Source of the DNA: Phaeosaccion multiseriatum
Taxonomy: Eukaryota > Protista > Ochrophyta, other classes
NCBI GenBank assembly: GCA_965112735.1
Contig: OZ218950.1
Location: 2,914,001-2,978,000, forward strand
Direction: 5' to 3'
Length of the DNA: 64,000 nucleotides
Shown here: positions 2,730 to 49,140 of the stretch, piece by piece
How positions within the stretch are numbered: position 1 is the first letter of the stretch
Layout of the letters: each line of letters opens with the position of its first letter
Notes under the pieces: generated by a model
The model's database searches: none
The model's input: only the letters and a program-made list of their open reading frames with translations
Told to the model about the DNA's origin: nothing
Position numbers and translations under genes: made by a program

Positions 2730-3765
2730 CGTTGAAACCGTCTGTGCAATCGTCGAGGACCAGCGGTCCCAACACGGCAGTGAGCGCCGATCAGCCCCGC
2801 TGGCCGCAAGGGCGGTCGGTCGCACCACCACTCCGCAAGGAGTGGGCAGAGATCCGAGCGGGGTCTGTGCCAGCCCTTGCTGCTTTCGCCTTGAGCGCTC
2901 TGGTGACCTTCCTCCGCTCTGTGAAGTTGCACACTTCCTCCGCCCTGCCCCGCCTTGTCGAGGTAAAAGGACAAAAGGCTGCCCCCCTCCTCAACCTCTC
3001 GCTCTAGCCCACGCTCTCCCCCGAAGTGGTAACGGAGGGCGTTTACCGCAGCCAGAACCGGGCAGAGAACATCTGTCCCCTCGTGCGTGCGCACCTCACC
3101 ATTCCTAAAATTGTCTGTCCTGCTTGCCCGTGAACGCCAACGTGACGCGAAGCATCTGCCCTCCACGGTCGACGGCCTCGAGGACTGCCCTCCCGAGAAG
3201 CTTGCAGCCTGCTGCTTCTGTGAAGGTGACGTCCAGAGGGGCTAGGATGTACCAATTGGATGTACCGCTCGTCCGCTCTCCCAATCACATTGTTGGGAGC
3301 AAAACCCAAACTCGCTCACACGCATCAGGAAAAACCCAACCCAAGCGATTGAGGGCCCACAACACGACGCCCCTCCTCCCATCAGAGCGGAGCGCCTCTC
3401 CCGCAGCCCTCCCTTGGTCCTTCCACATCCACCGGAAGCTGCGGGACGCTATCGCCATCTGTGAGTTTGTAGCCCCGAAGAACCAACGGCAGCTGTTTGG
3501 CGACAGCGGGGCCCTTTCTTCCCTCGCGGGAAAAAAGGGTATTCGCCGCCGGCCCCTTCCCCTCCACTGTAGACGCCTTGTTGTGCTTCTTCTCCCGACA
3601 CCAGGCAAGAAAAGCCATGAAGATGTCAGAATTCCGAGGGTCGTCGTCTCCGAACAGTAGGACCGGCGGCACCCCCACTAGTTCGCAACACTCGATCCAT
3701 TGGGCTGGACCGATGAGTCGCGATCCAGGGCGCTAGAGCGGAGACCGCCTACTACGGCAGCCCGG
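2730..3765 (-). mobile_element. Degenerate tyrosine recombinase (DIRS/Ngaro/Crypton-type) pseudogene with several frameshifts
   Basis: Collinear YR motifs on the minus strand, split across frames: QWIECC...FMAFLAW...KASTVEGK...VLRGYK...LPV; FFLMRVSEF (3308-3334); SRTD...LCPV (3055-3125); SAHSLRSGGAT (about 2820-2850); ALAASGAD...RWSS. No RT or RNase H is visible. Confidence 0.8.
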
Positions 3766-6040
3766 TGTGCTGGCCGACAGCACGCTCGAAAGCCCTCGCG
3801 AAGGGCCTGAGCGGGAAGGTTCTTTCCAATGAAGACCACCTTACTCACTCGCGGGGCCTGTCCCGGAGGGTGTGGCCAGTCTAGCGAGGGCGTAACGTCG
3901 AACAAGTCATGCACGCCCTGCAACACGTGGCGCGCCTCGCTGCCCTCCACTTGCAGCACCCCCTTGATCCGGTAGATCACCACCGCCTCAGACGCCTCTG
4001 CCGCCGCTGCCGCCGCGCCAGTCTCTCCGTGGGGGCTACTGCTGTCTACACTCGCCCCTCGCTGTTCGCCCTCTCCCTGTCCATCCGCGAGCTCTACGCC
4101 TTCTCCTCCTAGATGGCCATCGTCTGTGTCGGTCCACAGCAGGGAGCCTATCCATCGCTCCAACTCGGGAAGCACAACAAACACGTCCGTCTCTTCCAAA
4201 GGCACCGTGCCCACTCGCAAGTCGTGCACTCCGCACCGAGAAGACGAGTCGGAACCCCTCGTGTCGTTACCTCCATAGCAGTGCGGCCCATGCTCGTGAT
4301 CATGATGATGATGATGATGATGATGATGGTGATGCTGATGGTCAGCCTCTGGCTCTCTACCGTTACTATCACTGCCGCTGTGGTCATGACCTTTGCTGCT
4401 GCCACTACTGCCGGCCTGCTCTACCTCGAGCGCCTTCAAGGCCTTCTCCGGGCTGCAGCTATTGATGTCCATGATCCACCCCAGATCCACCACAGACCTC
4501 TCGGTGACGCGCACCTGCGCCTCGGCATTGAGTACCTTGAGACTGGTCTGCAGCTGCTCAAGGTCCGTGTCAGACACGAGGTCGGCCTTGTTGAGCACGA
4601 TGCGGTCCGCGTAGGCAATCTGCATGGTCGCCTCGTTCGGGTGTAGTAGCAGCTGCTGCAGTCCCGCGTCCTCCTCCCCCGCCTTCTCATCCTTCATCTC
4701 CTCTCCTTGTTTAATCGGGCTCTTTTGAGAGGCCTGGATGTGGTGCCCAATGTGCTTGGCGTCCACCAGAGTGACAATGCCGTCCAAGCGGAGGCAGCTC
4801 TCCACTGCGTCGTCCATCCAAAACACACTCGCCACAGGACCCTAGCCCCGTCCGAGAGAGAGAGAGAGAGAGAGAGAGAGGCAAGGCAGCGACAAAAAGC
4901 ACCAACAAGAAGATAAGAAAAGCGCATCATTCGATACACGTTACCCCCCTTCTTTTTTCTTTTTACTTCGCACTACACTTTGGCTCAGATTGATATCACA
5001 TAGGGAAGTGTCAAGCAAAAGCGCGTCTCTTGGTCTCTGAACAACCGTGCTGCAAAGGCACGCACGTACCGGGTTGGCAAGCCCCGTGGTCTCGATGATG
5101 ACATAATCGAACTTGTCCCTCTGCTCCAGCAGCATCTCCAGCGTGGTGACGAGGTCGTCCTTGACAGTGCAGCAGATGCACCCATTCTTCAGCTCAAAGA
5201 GGTTATCCGCCAGCTTGGTGCCGTCCTCGCCCTGTGTGTGTGTGTGTGTGTGTGCAATGGTGTGGAGTTTGCGGTAGTATCCCCCATTGGGGGCGGGAGG
5301 GGGGCAGAAAGAGAGGAGTCGGACACATAAGAGGAGAGTCGCGTATATAAGGCCTTTGTTTTTTTACCCGCAGTATTCCTGCCTTAACCCGCCAAACCAG
5401 CAGGATGAGGACGAGCAGGAGCGACACAATAGCTATCTTGCTTCCCCTCTCTTACCCGCGCAATGAGTTGCTCGATGTCCATACTATCGCCGAACTCGTT
5501 CTCAATGATGGCAATCCTCCTCCCGTGTGGCTGCCTGAGGATGTAATTGAGGAGAGTGGTCTTGCCCGACCCCAGGAAGCCCGTCACCACCGTAACAGGG
5601 ACACTGCGGTCAGCGGCTGGGGAAGACAGAGAAAACAATGGATGTGAAAGGTGGCGCGTGGACAGGAGTGTTAGACTCGGCAGAACAAGGCCTAATGGGG
5701 GGCACAGGGGGGGGGGAGCAAAGAGACGGGAAGCACCACCATCCCCTCAAACATGCCATGCTCTTCTTTCACCTTTGGGAACCGCAACATCCTTCCCTTC
5801 TGCTGGATCCTCCAGCTGCACTAGCGTAGGAGGTAGCTCTTCATCGTCATCCGTCTCCTCCTCCTCCTCCTCCTCCTCCTCCTCCTCCTCCTCCTCCTCC
5901 TCCTCCTCCTCCTCCTCCTCCTCCTCCTCCTTTCCTGCTGCTGCTTCTGTTGCTGCTTCTGTTGCTGCTCCCGCTCCTACTGCTTCTTCTGCTGCTGATC
6001 CTGTGGTCTCTCCTCCGCTCATGTGGCTTGGCTCCTCCAT
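3678..6040 (-). CDS. CobW/COG0523 (G3E family) Zn-metallochaperone GTPase, ZNG1/CBWD-like
   Basis: Spliced exons give PVTVVTGFLGSGKTT (Walker A), IIENEFG, GCICC (CxCC), IETTGLANP, QIAYADRIVLNKADL, a poly-His tract, and a CobW_C end (YRIKGVL...LQGVHD...VFIGKNL). ATG at 6040; acidic N-terminus. Confidence 0.93.
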
Positions 6041-23700: not shown

Positions 23701-26050
23701 GGAGTGTGTGGGTGCAGTATGATTAGGAACAACAAATTTCCGGCAAGAGGGAGAGAGCGAGACAGCGAGAGAGGAGAGAAAGAGAGAGCGGGAGACAAAA
23801 GAGCGCGAGAGAACAACGAGAGGTAAGGACGAGCGAGAGAGGCGAGGGAGAGAGACACGCGAGAAAACACATATACACAAACACACTCACGCACACACAC
23901 ACGCATGCACACATACATACACAAACACACTCACGCACACACACACGCATGCACACATACATACACAAACACACTCACGCACACACACACGCATGCACAC
24001 ATACATACACAAACACACTCACGCACACACACACGCATGCACACATACATACACAAACACACTCACGTACACACACACGCATGCACACACACATACACAC
24101 ACATGTATACACTTACCTTGAGCGCAAAGGTCCCTCCTCGAGTTCGAATGCGAGGCCGCTGCTGTGTAATGCCCAACACAGTCACGGCCACAAGCCCATG
24201 CACTGCCCCTAACTCCTCCTCCGTCGCTTCGCAAGGTGGTAATCCCAGCCGCCACCCCGGCCCAGCTTCCGCCCCTCCCGCCGTCGCTCCTCCTTCCTCG
24301 ACCCTCCTGCCCCTCCTGCCAGTGCTTCCCTGACCGACAAGCTCCACGCCAGCGATGATGGCGACGGGGTCCGGGTCTGTCGTCGTCGCGAGTTCGAGTC
24401 CTTCTCGGAGTCTCTCCATCACGTCCTTTGCTTCCTTGCACCCCCCGCTACCGCCGGTGAAGGGCGTGAAGCTGCATCGGCACGTGAGTGTCAACTGCTT
24501 TCGTTGTTGCGTGCCGTGTTCCTTTCTGGGGGACACTTCGGCTGGAGAAGCAACAGCAGGAGCAACGATGCCAATGTCGACTTCTTCCGTCCACCGTATG
24601 CTGCCATCCCCCTGCCCCTGCCCTCCTGCCGATTCGTCGAGCCCTTGCACCGTCCTCTCCCACAGGCCCCTCAGACTCGCCTCACTCCGACCGGGCAGTG
24701 CCGTTACAAGAAAGCTCAGCTCCTCGTGAGCCGCAATGCTCGCCGTGAGATGCAGTAGAGCAGAGCTTCGTTGCCGCCCCTCCCCTCCCTCCTTCTCTGA
24801 TACCCCATCTCGTTGGAGGCTGCTATCGCTGTCTCTGTTGTTGCTGCTGCCCATGTGGCTTTCGCCGCTGCTGCTCTTGCTGAGGTTGGAGAAGGTGCTG
24901 GCGCTGTTGCTCGGGGTGAGCAGCTCTAATGGAATGGAGAGCGCCCCATGCAGCATCGAGACGGGCAGTGTGGCAGAGGCCAGGCAGGTGGGACCACTCC
25001 TACTGCTGCTACTGCTGCTGCTACTGGTGGTGGTGGTGGTGGTGGTGGTGGTGGTGGTGGTGGTTTTCTCGGTGTAGACTCGGATGATCACTTCTTCAGT
25101 GCCTGAACGTAGGTAGCACGTGTAAGGAAAGAGCAGGAAGGGGTGTGAGGAGGGCGCTTTCGATGAGAAATGCGCTGTCCTATCTCCTCTGCTCAGTAGA
25201 GCTAGCAACGGAGGGGGGGGGGAGCTACACGGAAAGAGGGAAGGAGGGAGGGACTAACAGCAGTCCACAGCTCATTCAACCACCCCAACAACCCACCCAC
25301 CCACCAGCCCGAACCCACCCACCCACCCACTCCCTCCCTCACTCCCTCACCTGTCCTTGCTTCAATGACATGTGGCCCGTCCTCCGCCCCTCCCCAGCAA
25401 GGGTCCGCACAGGCGGGTACCCTTCCTGTCTCCCACAGGCGCTGTCCGTCCTCCATGGTCAGGGTGGCAAACACATCGGATTCGGAAGCCGCAGATTCGG
25501 AGGCCTCCACAGACATGGAGGCCTCCGCCTCTGATAGGCCCGTTGCCCCCCACACAGTGACAAACACCGCCGTAGTCGAGCTCTCGGTCGTCTCAGCAGC
25601 AGCAGCAGCAGTTGTGTATACAGCAGCAGCAGCAGTTGTGTATACAGCAGCAGCAGTTGTGTATACAGCAGCAGCAGCGTCCTCCCCCACGGCCGTACAA
25701 TTTGTTGAGTCCGAAAACTCATTCTGGCCCTCCTCCTCGGCCTCCTCTGCCTCCTCTTCCTGTTGCTCCTGCTTCTCCTGATCCTGCTCCTTGCCTGCTC
25801 CCTTGGTACGACTGCTACTGGCATCACTCAGGGATAGAGATATGGAAAGGCCTTCGCTGCTTCCCTCCTCCTGCTCCTCCTCCCCCTTGTTGCCGTTGCT
25901 GCTACTGCCCTCGCCACCGCTGCCCTCGCCAACGTACTGTCCTGAAGGGTAAGGGTATGGACTCTCATCGCCCCCTGGTCGAGGCATCTCCTGGGCAGGG
26001 AAGTCGAGCTCCAGCATGAGGCCCTCTCCCTCCTCCTCCTCCTCCTCCTC

Positions 26051-26096
<46 letters not shown>

Positions 26097-27614
26097 ATCA
26101 CCAACTGCTGCTGCTCCTGCTTCTCTATCACCAGCTGCTCTTCGTCCACGGCGTATACGAGTCTCTCCTTGAGCCTGACTTGCTCCTCCCCATCCCCCTC
26201 GAAGCGGACCGTCACCATCCCCTCCCGAGAGTGCACACCGAGCACTGTCGCCGCAGCGTAGTGCCCTTGCTCCTCGTGCTCATCCTCCTCATCATTCACG
26301 TCGTCCTTGTCGTCGCCAACCTTCGAGGCTCGACCCCCTCTCCTGAGCGCCTGCACTCTCTGCCCCACTATGAAAGGTGCATCCGAAGCGGTGCTCTCCG
26401 CATCATCATCATCACCATCACCATCATCATCATCATCATCATCATCGAATCCGCGGCCGTCACCCCGCCGCCGCAGCATTGGCCGGGGCTGTGCTTTAGC
26501 AGTTGGTGCTTCGCCACCTTCGTGGTCGTCGGAGAGCATTGGCACGCGCAGGGGTGCGTGTGCATGTCTTGCTCCTCCCTCCCCCTCCTCCTCCTCCTCC
26601 TCCTCCTTCTCCTCCTCCTCCCCCTCCTCCTCCTCCTCCTCCTCCTCCTCCTCTCCAGGGGCTCCGAGGGGCAACGAGGCGAGCAACTCTAGGGTGCCTG
26701 TCCTCTTCCTGCCCTTCCTGTCCCACAGAACGAGGTGCTCCTCCTCCTCCCTTCCCCCCCTCCTCTGTCTTCCCGGTCGCCGGACGCTTAAATCACAGTT
26801 GGCTAACCAGCCCAAGTCTACAACGGCTCTACCAACAAAGAACTCCTTATCGACTTCCTTCGCCGCAGGCTCTCGATTCTCCGTCAGCATCACCTCCCCC
26901 TCCTCTTCCTTACCCCCCTCCTCCTGCTGGTGCTGCTCTTCGCCGCCAGAATCTGTCCCACTCTTCGTTCTGCAACAACCCCACACCTCCACCATCACTT
27001 TACTGCTGCCGTCCATCATGACTGGAACTGACAACTCGTCCTGCCACTCCGCAGACAGCCTTCGCCTTCGCCGAGACTGAGACGGAGAGGGAGAGGGAGA
27101 GGGAGCGACTGCTACTTCTCGGCTCGATCCCACCCTCCTCCCATCTATCGAGACCTTCACGTGGAAGCACGTGGAGGAGGCCATAGAGGGCGTTTGCCCA
27201 TCACAAGACGACAGTTGCTGCTGCTGCTGCTGCTGCTGTATCACCAGCTGCTGCTGCGACTGCAGACGCAGTCCGTGTGCTGCCAAAAAGGTGAGATTGA
27301 TATCGACAGGCCCTGCAGCACTGCTCTCGGCATCCGAGTCATCGCCCTCCCGGCCACTGGCAGCTGTACGGTCGTCGTCATCTGCATCTTGGGGGTGGGG
27401 CAGCAGACTTCGGACCACTCGGAGTACCGCCCCTTCGATTTGCGTCTTTCCCCGGGGGTCCCACAGCCGCAGCTCCTGCACGCCCTCCTGTCGCTCCGCC
27501 GCCCCTGCAGCCGCCGCCGCTGCTGCTGCCGTATCACCAACTGCTGCTGCTGCTGCTACTGCTACCGGCTGCTCGAGACGGCTCGTCTGGACATAAGCTC
27601 GGGCTATCAATGTC

Positions 27615-27648
<34 letters not shown>

Positions 27649-30600
27649 GGTCAGTACTGCTACTGCGACTGCTACTGCCGCCCGAGGGGGTGCCCTGCTT
27701 CCTGTCCTTCTCTCCTCTGCGGCGGCCATCGCCTCCTTCTCTTGCCGCCCCAACACCAAACAGGGCTGTGCCCCCCCCCCCTCTCGTCTCCCACACTTCC
27801 AAGACCAGCGTACTGCTTCCGTCTTGCCGGACGGGCACCGACACTGCCTCCCACCACTGGGGGCTGACGCTGCTGCCGTTGTTGCTGCTGTTGTTGATGT
27901 TGTTGTTGGTCTTGACGGCCTGCGTCCTTCGCACCTCTTGCTCATCCACGAGAATCCTGACAAAGGTTCTCACCTCCACTGATTCGAGGATAGCATGCTG
28001 ATGCTGCCCACGACCCCTCCGCAACAAGCCCCCGCCCCCTCCTCGTCCTCCATTTCCTCCACCAACACTTGTATCGGCCATGGGAATTCCCTTTGCTTCG
28101 AGGAGCATGAGCTTCAGGTCCATTAGCCCTGCAGCGGTGCTGATACTGCTGCTGCTTCTACTCCCGATATCCTCCCCCTTCTTCTTCTGCTGCTGCTGCT
28201 GCTGCTGCTCCTCCTCCTGCGCTCTTCTCTTCTCCTCTACCTCGGCTTGAAGGCGCGGCAAAGAGCAGACGAGCCTCAAAATGCCCAGTGAAGACTCACC
28301 ATCATTCTCGTCGCTCTCGCCGTTGCCAGCGGTGAGACGCATGTCGTGGGTGCGCGTATAGGGAGCATCTTGCAAGCTCTTCGTACCGTTGGTGGTCGAC
28401 CTCACACTCTCGCGTGCTGCCTCTACCCGATCGTCTCGTTGCCCGTCCTGTCCTTCCCCTGTGTCATTGGCCTCGTTGACCGGTCTTTGTTGGTGGTGTG
28501 AATGTGCGCTGCTCTTGCTACTATTAGCAGTATGTATGCTGCTCTGGATGCTACTATTGCTGCTGATACTACCGCCATTCACCTTCTCTGCTGTGCTTGC
28601 TTCTTTTCGGCCCCGTGACCCTCCATTGTGCCCATGAGCCGCCTCCAGTTGGTCCTCCAGTTGGTCTTCAAAGTCATCTTCATCATAGGAAGCCTGGCCT
28701 TGACTCGCTGCCTCCCCTCCTCGCTGCCCTTGCTCTTGCTCGCCCTCCTCGTGCCGAACCAGGGCAGCCTCAACCCACTCCAGCGGAGGCCGAGCCCTGC
28801 CAATGCATCCGTCGCTGCCCGGCCCTGCGTCTCCCACCTCCCACACCTCAACCACCACCTCAACAGGATGGCGACTCAAGTGGCAAGAACTGCCACTACC
28901 ACGGCTGCTCCTGGTCCTCATACTCTCCTTGTTGTTGGTCTCCTTTCTCTTTCCTTCCTCTCTCGGCAAAGACACTGTCGCCGCCTCGCCCCACTCTACT
29001 TCGAGGGTGTTGGCGAGCGGCCTCGTGCGCTTAACTTCCACCCCGTCCACGACCACCTTGGCATACACATCTCCCTTCGCTGCTCTGGGCAGATCACGTG
29101 CCCCCATCACGGCCACCCGCACCTCCACTTCCTCTGTTGGCTCTTCTATGTCTGCCTCCTCCACCTCTTGCTCATCATCAGTGTAGCCTCCAGTGGACTG
29201 CCGTCTCACCAACTGTCGCTGCCGCTGCTGCTGCTGGTCCAGGCGGTCTTCGGTGTTGACCGAGTCTTCCATTTGCGCCGCTCTCTGCAGAGCGAGCTCC
29301 ATCTCCCTCTTCAGGCGGCTTCTCTTGGCCTGATTCTCTCTCACGAGGAGAGCCTCCAACTCATCAATCCTCTTCTGCCTACAGAACGCTATGCGGGCTC
29401 GGTCTGCTCGAATCTGCCTCTGTCGTTTGACCTCTCTCCGGTCCAGCGCGGAAACCTCCTGCCGCAAGTCTCTCGCCAGTTGCTCCTCGTCTCTGTGCTT
29501 ACAGATTAGGCGACGATGTCTGGACTGCAGAGCGAGGCGCTCCGTATAACCCTTGGAGACTCCTCCTCCTCCTCCTCCTCCTCCTCCTCCTCCTCCTCCT
29601 CCTCCTCCTCCTCCTCCTCCTCTGAGGTCTCTTCTCCTGCGCCCCCCAGCCCGCCCTGCGAGGATCAGCTTTGTGCCTCTCTTGGCGCCTCTTCCTCCCG
29701 GAGCACGTGCCTGGGGAGCGCTCGAAGGCCGCTGGAACAACGCCGTACTTCCCTGCCGGTGGTGCTGCTGCCTGTACTGCTGCCTGTGCTGCTGCCTTTG
29801 CTGCTGCTGCTGCTCGTACACGACCGATGCAGGTCCTCCTCGCAGCGTGGTCGGTCGCCCTGCTACTACAGGCCCCGCGAGCTCCTGCTGCTGCCGTCGA
29901 TGCCCGCTGCTTGGATAGGGCAAGGAGGAGGACGCCCCCCCCTCAGATGCTTTAGGAGGCCTCTGATGCTGGGGAAGTGGGGAGGAGGTGGCCAGGCCGA
30001 CGCCACCACCTGCTTCTTCTTCTTTTTCGTCGTCACCTTCATCTCGGTCGCTCCACCTCGGAACGTTTGGTGTCTCCGCTTCGCTTCCCGGGTGTGTTGC
30101 TCGATCACCACCCCCACTGCCCTTTCTCAGCATGAAGGCAGGAGAAAAGCCACTGGGACAAGCAGGCAGTGCAGCCCTCCCCTCCTCCTCCTCCTCCTCC
30201 TCCTCCTCCTCCTCCTCCTCCTCCTCCTCCTCCTCCTCCTCCTCTTCCTCCTCCTCCTCCTCCTCCTCCTCGGCCTCTTCTTCCTGCTCCGGCTGCTCCA
30301 TTGGTTGCTGCTGCTGCTGCTGCTGTTGCTGCTGCTGCGCCTTCAGCATGCCTTCCGCCAGGTCCATCCACATTACCTCCTGTCGTTGACCCTGCTCCTG
30401 CTGCTGCAGCTTGTGGCCCCTCTTCTGGCGCTGGGTATGAGAGAGCGCTGAGTGAGGACGGCGTTGTTCGCCATTGCCGGGTTCCACAGCTTGAAGAGTG
30501 ACGACCTTACGAAGGCGGAGGACCTCTCTGCGAAAATGCACGACAAGAGCAGAGAAACAGTAAGAACACGGCGGTATCAATGTCTGAAGGCTGGCCTCTG

Positions 30601-31089
30601 ACCTGTAGTATTCTTCGGCTTGGGCGTGAGCGTCTTCCAAGTGCGTGAGCTTTGCGCAGCGGTTCATCCTGTCTATTTCATCTTGGCGATGGACGAGGGT
30701 CCTTTTGAGCTGCTGCACAGTCCGCTTGAGCTCAGCATTGCTCGTCTTCGCTACCATCCACTGCATGTGCTGTAGAAACGCGGGCAGGGATGGAGATGGA
30801 GGTTAGCATCGACGACTGGGGAGGAGCGAAACGCACAAGCAAGGCCTCTCACCTGTGGGAGACTCTTTTGCTGGCCCTTGAGGTAAGCCATGCTGGCATC
30901 CAGCTCTTTCTCTCGGTGACGCAGGCTGTGCTCCAGTTGAGCCACCGCCGCCTTCTGAAGTCGTAGCTGGTCATCTTTGGCCGACAGCTCTTCCTTCACC
31001 TGAAGCAATTGCTGGGCGAGCGTCTCCCTGTCGAGCGTCTGCCCCCCTCGCACAGGCATTTGGTGTCCGTTGTCACGTATACGCATCAT
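20774..31089 (-). CDS. Giant low-complexity protein: IQCE-like N-terminal coiled coil, at least 4 C2-like domains and a Tudor-like module
   Basis: C2-like strands VRVAVMGARDLP..DVYAKVVVDG..KRTR..EW.E..VEVWE..CIGRA, repeated as LMLLEAKGIP, LTFLAAHGL and VTVWGATGL. Tudor-like FIVGQRVQA...YAAATVLGV...VTVRFEGD. Phase-consistent GT-AG introns; 3' exons approximate. Confidence 0.75.
23875..24105. repeat. Intronic 44-bp higher-order (CA-derived) minisatellite, about 5 copies
   Basis: Unit acacactcacgcacacacacacgcatgcacacatacatacacaa starts at 23881, 23925 and onward. Confidence 0.9.
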
Positions 31090-34444: not shown

Positions 34445-35022
34445 GGCTTGCTTTGCGCTTTTCGTTTCGCTTTCCGTTTCTGGGCCTGCCTCTGCTTCTG
34501 CTTCCTCTTCTTGCCCCCCCCCCCCAAATCCCCACCCCTTCCCTTGAGACCTCTCTGCCCCTCTTCCTCGTGCGTGTCGTGGGGTAAGAGGAGTAGGAGA
34601 GAGGTGTTGGGAGGGAGAGAGGTTCCTGGTGAAGTGAAGAGCTCTCCTCCATCTTTGCTGGGCGAACCCCCACGACGTCATGAAGAGAAGGGCTGCTTGA
34701 ATATCCAATTCCAATAACCGTCCCTCTCAGGGGTTGTTCCTATTCACTTTACTTCTACAAATAATCGGCGACTACGACACATGCCATGCCCAAGGCCTAT
34801 TTGATCAAAGTCGAGGATGGAAGGAAGCAAGCAAAGGGTTCGACAGAGCAACCCAAGCGCCTCCGAAAGCGCTCTCCGACGACAATGGCTGGCCAAGGGT
34901 ACCGTACCAACACCTGCCGCACGCCTAAGGGGGGGCACCGCTCTCTCGGGAGCAGAAGCGGTAGCTGCAAGCTACCACAGCTGCAAGGTACCACTACCCT
35001 CACGACGACAAGGGCTCTCCCT

Positions 35023-35078
<56 letters not shown>

Positions 35079-35168
35079 CCCCTCTCTCTGATCTGTGCTG
35101 TGCTGGGCTCCCCTGCTATTGCTGCGATGGGGGCGGTGAAAGCACAGATCCCGGCCCGGGCCTTGAAA

Positions 35169-36549
35169 CTATGCGTCCTCCTGAGTGGAGCTGTTGCCGC
35201 TTGTGCCCCCGCCACTGAGCCCCGCGGCCTCTAGATGCTTGGTGAGAGCCGGAAACCTGTCTGGGTCCTGCAGGAGGTCAGGATCATCCTTGACGACTTT
35301 GGAGGCGTCATCCCTCGCCTTGTGGAGGTAGAGCTTCTCTAGGCGGTCGATAACGGGCACATTCTTGCCGTGCCGAGCCCCGGGGGGCAGCAGAATGCCC
35401 GTGCTTATACACGCCTTGTCCAGCGTCTCTGCGGCGGCAGGCAGGGGCGCCGGGGGAGGCGTCGGAGAGGTGCATGGGACACGGCGGTACAGGCATAGGG
35501 TGTGTGCGTAAGAGAGAGAGGGTGTGAGAGCGGACAGCAACAGAGAAGGCGGGGGGCAAGCCAAGGCAAGCTGCATTGGATAGGGCGTCGACAAGCGTAC
35601 CGCTTCTTACCATTGAAAAGCGTCTCCGCCTTGGTCCTGACCAAGTGGCTGCTGGTCTCCCCCCCCTCTGCGCCCTCCTGCCCTTCAAGCTGCTGCTGCT
35701 GCTGCTGCTGCTGCCCCTCTGTTGCTGCCCCATCGTCCTCCACGATCCTGTCAGATCCCTTGTGGACGTCCACGTCGTCCTTCTTGCCCAGAAACTGGCG
35801 GTACGCCTTGCTCAGAGGCCTTTGCTTCATCTCCGCCTGTGTGTGTGCGTGTGTGTGGTGGTGGTGCGCGTTGTCAGAGCGAGGTCAAACATTCCAATAA
35901 TACGCTTTGCGAGGGAGCGAGTCAGTCCAACGCGATCCGAGCTCGCAGAGCAGCAACAAGCACCATACAAGTCGACACACCCGACGCCTCGCGTGCAGTA
36001 GACCGCCGGGTGTACACAGGCACCGAGGTAGCAGCAGGAGCAACACTCTCGACTCACTTTTTGCTTCTCCGCGTCTGCTGCCGCCGTCGCTTGCCAAGCC
36101 CTTTTCACGTCTGCGGGCAGACAGCAGAGCGGATCCACCTCCGCTTCCCTCGCCGCCGCCTCGTGCTCCTTTCGCTTCTTCTCTTCCGACGTTGGAGGTG
36201 AGGGTCCAAAGGTACTCTTCGCACTCGGACCAAAGCCACTGCTTGCGCTAACACCGTCCTCCTCGCCTTTACCCTTACCCTTCCCCTTCCCCTTCTTCTT
36301 CTTCTTTTTCTTCTTCCCCTTACTAGCTGAGCCTGCCTCTACCCCCTCCTTGGACCCATCGAGTACGTCATCTAGAGCGCCGTCGAGAATGTCGTCTAAG
36401 GAATCTGCTCCTCCTCCCCCCCCCCCTCCTCCTCCTCCTCCTCCTCCCCCTCCCCCTCCGTCACCTCCTCCTCCATCACCTCCTTCTCCTCCTCCCTCAC
36501 CTCCTCCAGGCAAAGGAATGTCATCCAGGAGTGAGTCCAGGTCATCCAT
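35169..36549 (-). CDS. Small protein with PEX19-like acidic N-terminal motifs and a BAG6-like C-terminal region
   Basis: Exons 36549-36058, 35836-35611 and 35428-35169 splice in phase. Motifs LDDILDGALDDV, WQATAAADAEKQKAEMKQRPLSKAY and LYLHKARDDASKVVKDDPDLLQDPDRFPAL. Confidence 0.7.
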
Positions 36550-36715: not shown

Positions 36716-37868
36716 ATGACTACCATTTACATCAAGGACGTGCCTGAGGGAACCACTGAGGGCGATGTGCTCCAGGCAGTAGGCGGGTACGGGCAGGTTG
36801 CGGACGGCGGCGTCGCTCTCCCAGAGGGGCGATCCTTCTCTTTTGTCACCTTCCTCACGGAGGAGCAGGCCGAGGTGAGGGGGGGGGGGGGAGGACGGAC
36901 GAAGGGCGAAACTAGTGCCAGGAGGAGGAGGAGCAGCAGTACTAGCAGTGGCGTGGCTGCGGGTGAAGAGAATGAGGCGGGCAGACGGAAGCTCGGGGGC
37001 ACAAAGTGCGGAACATGGGGCGGGCAGGGGAGTGAGGCGGGCAGGGAGGGGGGGAGGATTGTGCAGACGAGCTTGTGTTTTGATGGGGAAGGGAAGGGCG
37101 TGCCCCAGTGGTGCTGCAGCTGGGCACTCTCAGAGTACTTTGGGCACTTGATATAGCAGAACAAAGAACAAGGAAGGAAGGATCCACCGTTGAAGAACAC
37201 CAAAAACAGCAGCGAAACGAAGAGCGTGGACGTGGTGGCTCGGGCGGATGATAGGCGTTGGGCTAGAGCGTGCACTTCATTGTTTGCGCAGCTCCCCGTT
37301 TCACAGCCCTGTGCTGGGGCTGTATCTGATCTTCCGTGGATCTGAAATTGAACCGGTTGTGTTGCTGCTGTTGCTGCTGCTAACCCGCCCCCCCCCCCGC
37401 CGCCGCCCACTCTCCCTGTGCTCTTCTCCGTCGCGCAACTGCACGCGCACAGGCTGCTGCCGCCGCGGGCTCTTGCAACATCGCCGGAACGGACTGCATT
37501 GTCGAGATGCGGACCGGATCTCGTCGGGGACTGGGCCCCCAGGTGCCCGAGGGAACTGGCACCAGGTGAGAGAAGAAGCATAAGGCCGCTACTCTATCTC
37601 TTCTTTGAGTAAAGTCCCTCTCTCTCTCTCTCTCTCTATCTCTCTCTATTTCTCTCTCTCTCTTTCCCTCCCTCTCCTCCTCCTCTTGAACTTCAAGAGC
37701 CCTCTTTCTCGCCGCTCTCCCCGGCCAGTCTTCCCCCCCCCCCCCCTCCCTCCCCATCCACTTCCATCCCTCTCTAACATGCCGTTCTCTCCTCTCCCCT
37801 CCTTCCCTATTTCTTTCTGCCTACCCCCAACACCTTGAAAAACAAACCCAACACCACCACCACACACG

Positions 37869-42631: not shown

Positions 42632-44646
42632 GAGATCAGAAACAGCGAAAGTGTCTTTTGAGGGCAGGGAGAGGCCAGCGCGGGAGCAAGCGACCGCCTC
42701 TGCAACAAGCAATCGCCTCTCCCCTCAGCTCAGCTCAGCTCAGCTCAGCTCAACCAAAAGTCCCGCTCAACGCATTATTCCCCTCCCCTCAAGTCTCTCA
42801 CCTGCGCACATTGGGCTGAAACTCGTCCACCATGCCAAAGTCATAAAACACGAGAGAGCCGCCATAGTCCGCGTCGCACGCCACATTGCCCGGGTGGGGG
42901 TCGCAGTGAAAGAAGCCAAAGCGGCACAGCTGGGTGAGGTATGCCTCTGCGCTTCTCTTGGCCAGCAGCTTTCGGTCAATGCCGGCAGCGTCAATAGCCT
43001 CAAGGTCATTGACTTTGATGCCGGGGACGAACTCCATGGTGATGACACGCTCCGAGGTGAGGTTGGTGTACACTCCGGGCACTTTGACATACTTTGTGTC
43101 CTTGAAGTTGTTGGCGAAGGTAATGGCGTTCTGAGCCTCAATGTTGTAGTCAATCTCTCGGTACAAGAGCTTTGCGCTCTCTTCGTAGACGCGCACCCAG
43201 TCGCGGTCGGCGCCGTCAAATTTGGGGTCCAGTTTGTCGAAAATGGTGACGGCCAGCTTGAGATTCTGAAGGTCCTGATCGAACAGCGACTTGAGCCCCT
43301 GGCGCTGCACCTTGACTGCTACTTTCTGATCAGTGCCCTTGAGGTAGGCTGTGTGCACCTGCCCTAACGAGGCCGCGGCCAAGGGCACCTCACTGAAATT
43401 GTCGTAAATCTCATCCACGGGGCTCCCCAAGTCCTCCTCGATAATCTGCTTTGCCTTCTCAACGCTGAAGCCAGGCACCTGGTCCTGCAACAACACAAGC
43501 TCTTTAATGTACTCAGGAGGTACCACGTCGATGCGCGTGGACAGCAGCTGGCCTAGCTTGATGAAAGTAGGGCCCAGACGAAGCAGGCCCTCCCTGAGCT
43601 TCGCTGCAAGAATGACTCTCGCCTCGGACCTCTCCTCCGCTGTCACTTTCCTGAGCTTTGCCTCTTTGAGTCCAAACTTTATGGCAAACAAGTAAATCTC
43701 CAGGCTTCGAGAAATAGCCGACCCTACTCCTCGTCTGTTCCACCCAGCCTCAATGTCAAGCGCCTCCACAGCACCGGTCGAGGAGGCCGCTTCGTTCGCA
43801 GAGTTGCTGTCGTCCTTCCTGAACGTTGAAGATAATGAGCGGCTCTTCCCCACCGCCCGCGACGCCAGCGCCCTCGTAAAGTCCCTCTTTCGCAAGTCTC
43901 CCTCTCTGAATGTATGTATGCACAACATTGACATTGCATTGCACCCACGGAGGAGGAGGAGGAGGAGGAGCAGCAGCAGTAGGAGGAGGAGAAGAGGGTG
44001 GACGAGGAGGAGCAGCAACAGGAGTACGAGAGGGAGAGAAGGGCGTAAGTACAGGATTTAGGCAGCTAAGGGTAAGCTCAAGAGATCGGGCCAGCAACAT
44101 GTACTGCTAAGAACTTATTGAACAACAAGTAGAAGCCAAAAACAGTCAAGGGGCGGCCGCTCTGCCCAGCAGCAAGTGCACTTTATCCATCAAGCAATCG
44201 GCCCCGGCCCAACAGGGGAATGAGGCAGTCACATCATCTAGAGAACAACATGGACGTCAAGTCATGCTCTCGAAAGACAGCCTAACACAGCGATGTAAAG
44301 GATTGGGAACGTACATAGCCGCCCGGAAGATGTCCTTCGTCTTGATCTTTCGCCACAGGCCAGCGTTGAGCGAAGCCTTGCCCTTGGACGGAAGGGCAAT
44401 CGCGCTCTTCATCACCAACCCCTGCCCATGCTGCCCCCTCCTCTGCTGACGCTGCTGCTGGTGACGATGGAGGCCATTTCCATTCACTGACCCTCTCCCA
44501 GGTGCGGTGGTAAAGGCAGGAGCGTTGGGGGAAGAGCATGACGACGAGCACGGAGAGAGAGAAAAGCCGAATGCTGCGACTGGAGTTGTCGCGCTGTAGG
44601 TGGCTCCCACGGCACCGAGGACCGCCCCAGCAGCGGTCACCCTCAT
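39819..44646 (-). CDS. ABC1/UbiB-family atypical kinase, ABC1K8(OSA1)/ABC1K7-like, plastid-targeted
   Basis: [75 protein letters not shown]. The N-terminus [11 protein letters not shown]...VAA|FGF resembles a bipartite plastid signal. The terminal exon is tentative. Confidence 0.92.
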
Positions 44647-46896: not shown

Positions 46897-49140
46897 AACC
46901 AATGCGCCAGAGGAAAAATAGAGGACATGAGAGCCTAATCCCCGAGCGGATGGATGCGATGCGCTACCAAAAGGGGACGAATGACACCAGACCGGCACAT
47001 AGTTGACTGAGTGGCGAGAGTTCAACCCCTCCCCTCCCAGAGGAAGATGAAGAAGCAAAGTCGCCTTCCCTACTTCATCCCCAACCGACCCTGGCTAGTC
47101 CTCGTAAGGTCTACAAACAAAACAGAAACAGAACTGAACCTGAAACTGACCTGGCTGGTGAAGGAGTCGAAGACGAGGAATAGCAAGATGAGCATGATGC
47201 CACATGCGAAGTTACCCCCCCCTGCGTCGTCAGGCTGGCCGAAGCCGTCCGTGGTGAGGCTCACACCCTCGCTACTTTGCACGAACAGCGTGCACCCCAG
47301 CGCGATGAGACCCTGGGGTGGGCATGGATCACCAACCGACCAATCACAGAGGACGGGACGAAGGGTTGACCAGTAGCGAAGGAGAGAGGAGGACCCACAG
47401 GGGGGAAGGGGGCGGGTCAAGGTCTGCAAGTGTGTGGTGGGTGTGTGCGTGCGGTCCTTTGGAGGGTCTCTTTTGAGTACGTGATTGAATGGTGGTGGAT
47501 GGCTACCGTTACTCACCGCGACAACGTAGTCGTACAGCGGGTAGCTCTTGTCTCCAAGGAGCTTACCCATGACCATAATGGGGGCGATTTTGAAGCTCTT
47601 GGACAGCACTTGCGTGGGGAAGGTAACGTATCTGGGCAGCAGAAGAAGCACACACGTTGCCGACACAAGTGAGAGACCGTCGAAGAGGGGGTGGAAGAAA
47701 AGACATGCCTCGAGTGGTTGCGTCTCTTGATGAGTGCGTGCGTGCGTGTGTACCCACGCGTGTGTGCGGTGCGCGTGTTTGCACTCACTTAAGCGCCTCA
47801 TATTGGCACCAGCTGCTGAGCATGTTGCTGACTGCAGGGAAGGAGTATTCGTAGGCCATAGCTTTGCTCCAAGTGGGCCGCGTGTGGAAGAGGAAGGCGC
47901 CGCTGGGGAGGGAAGGAGGGGTGTGGAGAGAGGAGCGGAGGGGAGGGGGCAAGGAGAGAGTGGCAAGGAGAGAGGAAGGGGCGTAGGGAAAGGCTGGGTG
48001 GGCGAAACAGGACACACACACATACACAGAACACACACATACACACAAAACACACACGCACGCACACGCCGCCCCCCCAGGAACGCACTCACCTGAAGCA
48101 AAGGCCGATGAATCTGTTGGTGAACACGAGGCCGTACGAGTAGGTGAAGAACTCGCCTTCGCCGTACTCCATCTTCAGGATTCGCTCCTGCAAGATGCCC
48201 CAGGTGACCTGCATACAAGCAAAAAAGGGAGGCGGGAGGCGAGTAAATGAGCAGCAGCAGCAGCAGAAGGACGGGGTGGTGGTGGTGGTGGTAGTGGTGG
48301 TGGTGGTGGAGGAGGAGGAGGAGGAGGAGGAAGAGGAGGAGGAGGAGGAGGAGGAGGAGGAGGAGGAGGAAGAGGAGGAAGAGGAGGAGGAGGAGGAGGA
48401 GGAGGAGGAGGAGGAGGAGGAGGAGGAGGAGGAGGAGGAGGAGGAGGAGGAGGAGGAGGAGGAGTATCACCCCATAGCGACTTACAAATGTGACGTTGAG
48501 GCCCACCGCCAGGCCTGCCAGTCTCCGCAGCACCTGATCCTTGGTCTGAAACTGCTCATGCACGCGCGCACACAGGTGGCGGGCGGACAGGCCGACACAA
48601 GAGCACAGGAACAAGAGACACGGGCGGGAGATGGTGCCGTGCAAAGGGAGGGAATGATGAGGCGGGAGAGGCAAGAGATACTCATCACGGCCCTGTTGAT
48701 GCCCCCTGATGCACGGCCCGCTAGCGGAAGCCTCACGGCCATCTCACACCTCTCGAAGGCCTGGTTTACGCTTCAGTATATAGCCAAGACTCCCTCCACC
48801 CGTGGAACAAGGATCATGCATTCAATATCGTAGACAGACCAGGAGACGTGAGCAATCCTCCTGTCTCTGTCTCTGTCTCTCCCTTTGACACCCCCCCCCC
48901 CCGGAGTTTTGCCCCACACACTGAGCGCACCTTCTCTCCCTCCTCAAAATTGAGCAAGCTCATCCGCCGAGGGGGTAAGGTGCCGCTGCTGGAAGGTTCT
49001 TTGCTGCTGCCCGGTGCCCCTCCGCCAACGCTACCGCTGCGGCGCAACTCACGCCTCGCCTCGACGCTGGCGGAGGTTAGCTCCAGCCCTGATACAGAGT
49101 AAACAAGATATTTCGGGACAGTGTCGTTTAGGAGATAGAT

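Follow-up and report, generated by a model that had tools for sequence, protein, structure and literature searches.

The 64,000-nucleotide stretch of DNA from the heterokont alga Phaeosaccion multiseriatum that was analyzed here (the window) contains a minus-strand gene at 36549..35169, in which three exons separated by canonical GT..AG introns join into one uninterrupted reading frame of 325 codons and a stop (Table 1). GC content by codon position is 0.68/0.36/0.81 in exon 2 and 0.66/0.44/0.76 in exon 3, indicating coding periodicity, and this pattern is like that of a Pfam-confirmed reference exon (ABC1) within the window (0.59/0.37/0.72); in introns 1 and 2, GC content is flat by position, with no coding periodicity. 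The sole alternative acceptor found for intron 2, a CAG at 35571, breaks the frame when used. An earlier examination of the same DNA from its letters alone (the sequence-only reading) had described a spliced protein of about 325 aa, and the joining of the exons in one frame across canonical introns bears this out. The three-exon gene is considered real, with its splicing predicted from the sequence, and its product is probably a largely disordered, low-complexity protein of 325 aa, the C-terminus of which reads ..TQEDA. All four strings quoted in the sequence-only reading are present in this product, namely, MDDLDSLLDDI (aa 1-11), DSLDDILDGALDDVLD (aa 49-64), W..PLSKAY (aa 152-176), which straddles the junction of exons 1 and 2, and LEKLYLHKARDD..DPDRFPAL (aa 269-301).

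Table 1. Features of the minus-strand gene, in window coordinates
Feature	Position	Strand	Description
Exon 1	36058..36549	(-)	aa 1-164; ATG at 36549, GTGAGT donor at end
Motif 1, MDDLDSLLDDI	36517..36549	(-)	acidic LxxLL helix at extreme N-terminus
Gly/acid low-complexity spacer	36409..36507	(-)	aa 15-47; (CCT/CCC)n-type repeat; public contigs end here
Motif 2	36358..36408	(-)	aa 48-64; LDDILDGALDDV aligned with human PEX19 LEELLESALDDF (residues 18-29)
Lys/Gly run	36265..36321	(-)	aa 77-95
TRC35/Get4-docking-like stretch, first half	36058..36120	(-)	aa 144-164; L144/V148/W152 aligned with BAG6 W1004/V1008/W1012
Intron 1	35837..36057	(-)	221 nt, GTGAGT..CAG, phase 0; interrupts the TRC35-like stretch
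Exon 2	35611..35836	(-)	aa 165-239 plus one base; strong coding periodicity
TRC35-like stretch, second half	35789..35836	(-)	aa 165-180, RPLSKAY..L; L172/Y176/L180 aligned with BAG6 L1032/Y1036/M1040
Poly-Gln run	35690..35713	(-)	aa 206-213, in linker; (CAG)n repeat; public contigs end here
Intron 2	35429..35610	(-)	182 nt, GTAAGA..CAG, phase 1
Exon 3	35169..35428	(-)	aa 240-325 plus TAG stop at 35169-35171
BAGS-like region, main part	35250..35428	(-)	aa 240-299; helix-1-like TLFNETLDKACIST, long helix, then DDP..DPDRFP

Much of exon 1 and of the exon 2 linker consists of repeat-derived low complexity (Gly/acid, Lys/Gly, and poly-Gln), of which the Lys/Gly run is possibly a nuclear-localization or a membrane- or nucleic-acid-binding patch. 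The four public runs that include the locus come from one sample and yield DNA-like contigs, with the introns present, that are identical to the window outside the repeats. All four assemblies break inside the gene, at (CAG)n in 35682-35724, (GT/GTG)n in 35831-35868, and (CCT)n/(CTT)n in 36257-36507, and because of these breaks, there is no independent confirmation of how long the poly-Gln, Gly, and Lys runs are. Another microsatellite, (CT)n of ~70 bp at 35020-35090, lies in what is presumably the 3' UTR, ~80 bp past the stop.

On the plus strand, an RRM-domain gene (36716-36877; Pfam RRM_1, E = 4e-5 on its first exon) lies head-to-head with the studied gene, its ATG 166 bp upstream of the ATG of the latter, an arrangement that looks like a bidirectional promoter. 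Because the RRM gene begins at this distance, the start of the studied gene is fixed, and an undetected exon encoding a UBL could not fit at the N-terminus. The fixed N-terminus and the absence of any Pfam match on exon 1 agree with the earlier statement that the UBL domain and the Pro-rich region of BAG6 are absent. Elsewhere in the window, a stop-free stretch of 1854 codons at 25205-30766 (-) encodes a single C2 domain along with long acidic low-complexity parts, the ABC1 atypical-kinase exon that served as the codon-usage reference is located at 42801-44018 (-) (Pfam E = 1e-75), and an exon at 47073-48674 (-) matches a UAA nucleotide-sugar transporter.

Two C-terminal blocks aligned with BAG6

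According to the TRC35-BAG6 structure paper, BAG6 contacts TRC35 via W1004, V1008, and W1012 (interface I) and via L1032, Y1036, and M1040 (interface II). When algal W152 is set on human W1012 in an ungapped comparison of aa 144-189 with BAG6 1004-1049, all six contact positions are matched at the same spacing, four by identical residues (V, W, L, and Y) and two by hydrophobic substitutions (W to L and M to L). The 12 identities among the 46 positions are enriched on the TRC35-contact positions (hypergeometric P = 0.03), and the block reaches a Smith-Waterman score of 43, with P ~1e-3 against shuffles of the algal protein.

The second block, aa 236-299, begins in exon 2 (35611-35623) and resembles helices 1 and 3 of the BAGS domain together with the DP..RFP tail. 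The BAGS interface, as given in the paper on the Ubl4A complex, includes L1064, V1068, A1071, A1072, A1077, P1079, L1080, L1086, L1090, and Y1099, along with D1106; mutating L1086 together with one other residue abolishes Ubl4A binding. With algal Y272 set on human Y1099 and no gaps allowed, L1064/V1068/A1071/A1072/G1076/Y1099/D1106 of BAG6 correspond to F/L/A/C/G/Y272/D279 of the algal protein, and the algal DDP is aligned with EDP of BAG6 and the subsequent DPDRFP with SPQRFP. No algal counterpart is seen for the loop and helix 2 of BAGS (P1079, L1080, L1086, and L1090). This block scores 51 by the Smith-Waterman method (P ~6e-4 against shuffles of the algal protein). A single-sequence AF2 model of exon 3 alone is of low confidence (pLDDT 54); in this model, a long helix (aa 262-286) spans the stretch aligned with helix 3, a short helix coincides with the C-terminal portion of what corresponds to helix 1, and no helix 2 is predicted.

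Over part of the helix-3-like stretch, a closer match than BAG6 is provided by the C-terminus of a bacterial RecG-like helicase. This helicase, encoded on an AT-rich marine metagenome contig (L001 1081-1167), shares 14 of 16 residues with the algal KARDDASKVVKDDPDL helix, and the RecG tail and the algal long helix have KARD.A.KVVKDDPDL in common. A relationship with RecG was rejected, the match, which was the sole one in a metagenome scan with exon 3, being attributed to chance; such a helix therefore recurs easily.

The scores of the TRC35 and BAGS blocks are uncorrelated and were never reached together in 80,000 shuffles, and the Fisher combination of their empirical P values is ~7e-6. The summed score of 94 was never reached in the 80,000 shuffles either (maximum, 93), and the window's 322 stop-free stretches of 100 aa or longer peak at a sum of 78. 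Comparison with a four-sequence vertebrate profile using hhalign recovers the same two blocks, with P values of 0.0075 and 0.019 and probabilities of 5% and 2%. The above-chance, colinear match to BAG6 contact residues is, like the gene model and the motifs, a direct observation of this analysis. For a proteome with an assumed size of ~20,000 proteins, the combined P translates into roughly 0.1 chance matches to one query; because the sequence-only reading effectively involved comparison against many families rather than one query, these statistics are suggestive, not significant.

Kinship with BAG6 received no backing from profile searches. Pfam Bag6_BAGS (PF20960; 53 positions, cut-off 22.9 bits), on which vertebrate BAG6 fragments score 79-98 bits, gave no match at E<=10 with exon 3 or with a 69-aa segment across the junction of exons 2 and 3. 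Likewise, no BAG6 chain was returned by phmmer against the PDB at E<=10, whether the query was exon 2, exon 3, or a 57-aa peptide across the junction. The probabilities obtained with hhalign are low. Nothing relevant was found in Pfam with any exon or N-terminal piece, and by the profile tests run, the algal protein is not a member of the Pfam Bag6_BAGS or Pex19 families. An exhaustive phmmer search with exon 3 against 1.84 billion cluster representatives yielded two proteins only (P0001 and P0002), both of which were rejected as artefacts consisting of 5-7 near-identical tandem repeats of ~60 aa, whose summed scores mimic significance; one of the two proteins repeats ..GSDRFPALRAE... Word searches from a stop-free 240-aa reference gave nothing for region 100-164 and Gly-rich junk only for region 1-70, and in the ESM Atlas, exon 3 led to low-recognition methyltransferase clusters and exon 1 to no usable match. 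No ortholog was found by these Pfam, phmmer, word, and metagenome searches, in which the databases were queried with pieces of exons and with segments no longer than 72 aa.

The human sequences quoted in the sequence-only reading proved correct, the BAG6 and PEX19 strings matching PDB entries 7ru9_D, 6au8_C, 4x86_B, 4wwr_A, and 3mk4_B at 100%. Specifically, the last 123 residues of human BAG6 used in the comparison match 7ru9_D exactly, as well as 6au8_C, 4x86_B, and 4wwr_A over the parts that these chains hold, and residues 14-33 of human PEX19 were checked against 3mk4_B.

A doubtful but serious possibility is that the gene encodes a lineage-specific, repeat-inflated disordered protein with an unrelated function, the likeness to BAG6 and PEX19 being made up of chance matches between short motifs picked by comparison with many families. 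This explanation accommodates the lack of support for any family from profile or database searches, the microsatellite origin of much of the low-complexity protein, the ease with which a 16-residue stretch of the long helix matches the RecG tail (14/16) by chance, the hhalign probabilities of 2-5%, and the P value of 0.05 for the PEX19-like match (see below) at kept composition. However, chance would also have to account for two independent blocks, each with P ~1e-3, that are found in the right order and in the C-terminal position, the first of them on all six defined contacts in register, when nothing else in the window comes near. If the resemblance is indeed due to chance, the gene is one more repeat-rich orphan.

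N-terminal acidic LxxLL motifs

The Pex19 peptide of H. polymorpha has been crystallized with Pex3, and the motif consists of an LxxLL triad plus Phe, with a shorter spacing in yeast (PMC12797020, 2025). Motif 1 of the algal protein is identical to DDLDDLLDDF of this peptide in 8 of 10 positions, with Ile-11 instead of Phe. Motif 2 matches all hydrophobic positions of human PEX19 18-29 at the human spacing, with Val-62 in place of Phe-29 (score 36, P ~0.003). The leucine triad is present in both motifs (L4-x-x-L7-L8 and L51-x-x-I54-L55); the residue characteristic of this motif, a Phe facing the PEX3 cavity, is absent, its place being taken by Ile-11 at the yeast spacing and by Val-62 at the human spacing. 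When only the D/L-rich motif region is shuffled, the P value of the PEX19-like match becomes 0.05, and because this is the value once local composition is kept, the likeness to PEX19 is mostly compositional. A proline follows two residues after motif 1. Pex19 was not matched in Pfam by the exons or N-terminal pieces, and neither N-terminal motif matched a PEX19 or BAG6 chain in the PDB.

The sequence-only reading had interpreted these motifs as PEX19-like docking sites for PEX3. The LxxLL triad withstands scrutiny, whereas the characteristic Phe is replaced, the Pex19 profile is not matched, and the similarity is mostly one of composition. The same reading had noted the absence of the PEX19 cargo domain and CaaX box, which is confirmed by the lack of a Pfam match and by the end of the protein, and a divergent PEX19 was rejected as an identification, given that the protein is without cargo domain, CaaX box, or profile match. 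The sequence by itself does not allow the N-terminal helices to be assigned to PEX3.

A role as a GET-to-peroxisome adaptor, in which a mini-BAG6 would sit on PEX3 by means of its PEX19-like helices and bridge the Get4/Get5/Get3 pretargeting complex to peroxisomes, is very unlikely. The idea draws on the 8/10 match of motif 1, with the triad intact and the same two-residue gap before the next hydrophobic position, and on the agreement of motif 2 with the hydrophobic residues and spacing of human PEX19. Furthermore, other proteins (Inp1 and Atg30) are known or predicted to occupy the same Pex3 cavity as Pex19, and peroxisomal tail-anchored proteins are delivered via Pex19-Pex3 or via GET. However, these points are set against the replacement of Phe by Ile-11 and Val-62, the proline two residues past motif 1, the missing Pfam and PDB matches to Pex19, and a likeness that is largely compositional (P = 0.05); moreover, bridging to PEX3 in this manner depends on the kinship with BAG6 being true. 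The proposal in its entirety, namely, a natural UBL-less mini-BAG6 that would link Get4 and Get5 and dock the tail-anchor pretargeting complex on PEX3 via the LxxLL helices, is most improbable. If this full proposal were true, the BAG6 scaffolding module would predate animals, and the peroxisome link, if real, would represent a new route for tail-anchored proteins.

Acidic LxxLL helices of this kind can also be read as nuclear export signals. Paxillin-type LD motifs and leucine-rich export signals are like algal motif 1 in fitting LDXLLXXL and in being disordered, acidic, and N-terminal. LDSLLDDI (aa 4-11) fits this pattern, with Ile as the last residue; the pattern is very common, retrieving >6000 human sequences (10.1101/278903), so the fit says little. 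According to that proteome-wide study, LD motifs were co-opted from nuclear export signals, exportin-1 (XPO1) was present in all proteomes examined, and LD-motif signaling and the corresponding binding domains arose in the ancestor of opisthokonts and amoebozoa (10.1101/278903); because of this origin, only the exportin interpretation would be applicable in an alga. In such a case, the LD-type motifs would be read by exportin-1, the Lys-rich runs would serve as import signals, and the protein would shuttle between the nucleus and the cytosol, with or without a role in GET. We consider this unlikely. Apart from the LDXLLXXL fit and the derivation of LD motifs from export signals, it is consistent with the series L4-x2-L7-x3-I11-x-L13, which by our own reading fits the spacing of leucine-rich export signals, and with the Lys run (aa 77-95) and the basic residues near PLSKAY, which are reminiscent of the bipartite import signal masked by TRC35 in BAG6. 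However, highly acidic LxxLL helices serve many other partners too, and shuttling leaves the C-terminal blocks unexplained.

Relation to known scaffolds and a candidate role

The minimal module of metazoan BAG6 (human ~1000-1132; 7RU9 chain D, 6AU8 chain C, 4WWR, and 4X86) and the algal protein share the order of their elements: first a hydrophobic stretch with a Trp in it, then basic residues, PLS[D/K]AY, a linker, and a helical domain, with a DP..RFP tail at the end. The six TRC35-contact positions of BAG6 have algal counterparts in register, and BAGS helices 1 and 3, Y1099, and D1106 have putative ones. Compared to full-length BAG6, the algal protein is without the UBL domain, the Pro-rich region, and the BAG6 (PF12057) domain; its linker comprises 60 residues versus 28 in BAG6, BAGS helix 2 and Leu-1086 are not recognizable, and PF20960 is not matched. 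In addition, the host belongs to the heterokont algae, while BAG6 is termed a metazoan factor in the structural literature; the work on TRC35-BAG6 describes it as a metazoan addition that replaces the direct Get4-Get5 contact.

Two other known proteins are similar in part. Yeast Get5/Mdy2, like the algal candidate, is a scaffold of small size that combines a peptide for binding Get4 with a helical dimerization domain at the C-terminus, structurally similar to the BAGS-TUGS pair. In Get5, however, the Get4-binding part is N-terminal and a central UBL binds Sgt2, and neither feature is seen in the algal protein. The N-terminal helix of PEX19 (human 14-33 in 3MK4/3AJB; H. polymorpha in PMC12797020) likewise has an acidic amphipathic LxxLL at or near the N-terminus, and the algal motifs represent both the yeast-type and the human-type spacing of PEX19. 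The algal protein differs from PEX19 in the change of Phe to Ile/Val and in having no recognizable PEX14-binding motif, cargo domain, or CaaX box.

Of the mini-BAG6 described in the sequence-only reading, what survives is the pair of colinear blocks above chance, with the six TRC35-contact positions in register; BAGS helix 2 and a profile match are missing. We tentatively regard a UBL-less, mini-BAG6-like scaffold as a plausible interpretation of the protein, the likeness being at the motif level only. The chances of this interpretation are raised because the blocks are colinear, C-terminal, and located on experimentally defined contacts, and they are lowered because helix 2 is missing, the profile test failed, and no orthologs were found. 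If the BAG6 likeness holds, the algal protein would be a variant of BAG6 that is UBL-less and non-metazoan and has different N-terminal motifs. No such mini-BAG6 protein surfaced in a non-exhaustive literature search.

A minimal C-terminal fragment of BAG6 suffices for the targeting of mammalian tail-anchored proteins (reviewed in PMC8287540), and the order and C-terminal position of the algal blocks are the same as in the sufficient fragment (7ru9 chain D, 132 aa). We infer every binding event and the pathway assignment in the following scheme, for which the algal Get4, Get5, and PEX3 lie outside the window. The C-terminal 180 residues of the algal protein would act like the minimal C-terminal module of BAG6. 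As an extended peptide, aa 144-180 would wrap the C-terminal domain of the algal Get4/TRC35 via L144/V148/W152 and L172/Y176/L180, as the NLS region of BAG6 wraps TRC35, and the Get4 complex may mask the basic residues on either side. The helical tail (aa 236-299) would pair with a C-terminal domain of the Get5/Ubl4A type or, alternatively, dimerize as Get5 does. The two N-terminal acidic LxxLL helices would recruit a partner, be it PEX3, exportin, or another protein. The whole protein would thereby serve as a small, UBL-less scaffold of the pretargeting complex for tail-anchored proteins in a heterokont alga.

Plants, Plasmodium, and diatoms still lack a settled occupant of the Get5/BAG6 slot in the pretargeting complex (for diatoms, PMC11170914). 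In a diatom, Sgt2 and Get4 candidates were all that BLAST recovered (PMC11170914), and because of this, the bridging factor is an open slot in heterokonts. If the BAG6 interpretation is true, the algal protein would be a concrete, cheaply testable candidate for the missing Get4-Get5 bridge and would suggest that the peptide docking on Get4 long predates animals or originated twice.

Finally, intron positions were compared with those of vertebrate BAG6, for which two turtle contigs (L002 and L003) were read and the locus on L002 was used. The vertebrate intron is about two codons off algal intron 1 and thus does not occupy the same position, so a shared intron was rejected and is not used as evidence. 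The same turtle locus (3552-4024) contains at least five tandem copies of a short exon that encodes ..YL.GMPAKRRK, which are either an assembly artefact or the result of local duplication.
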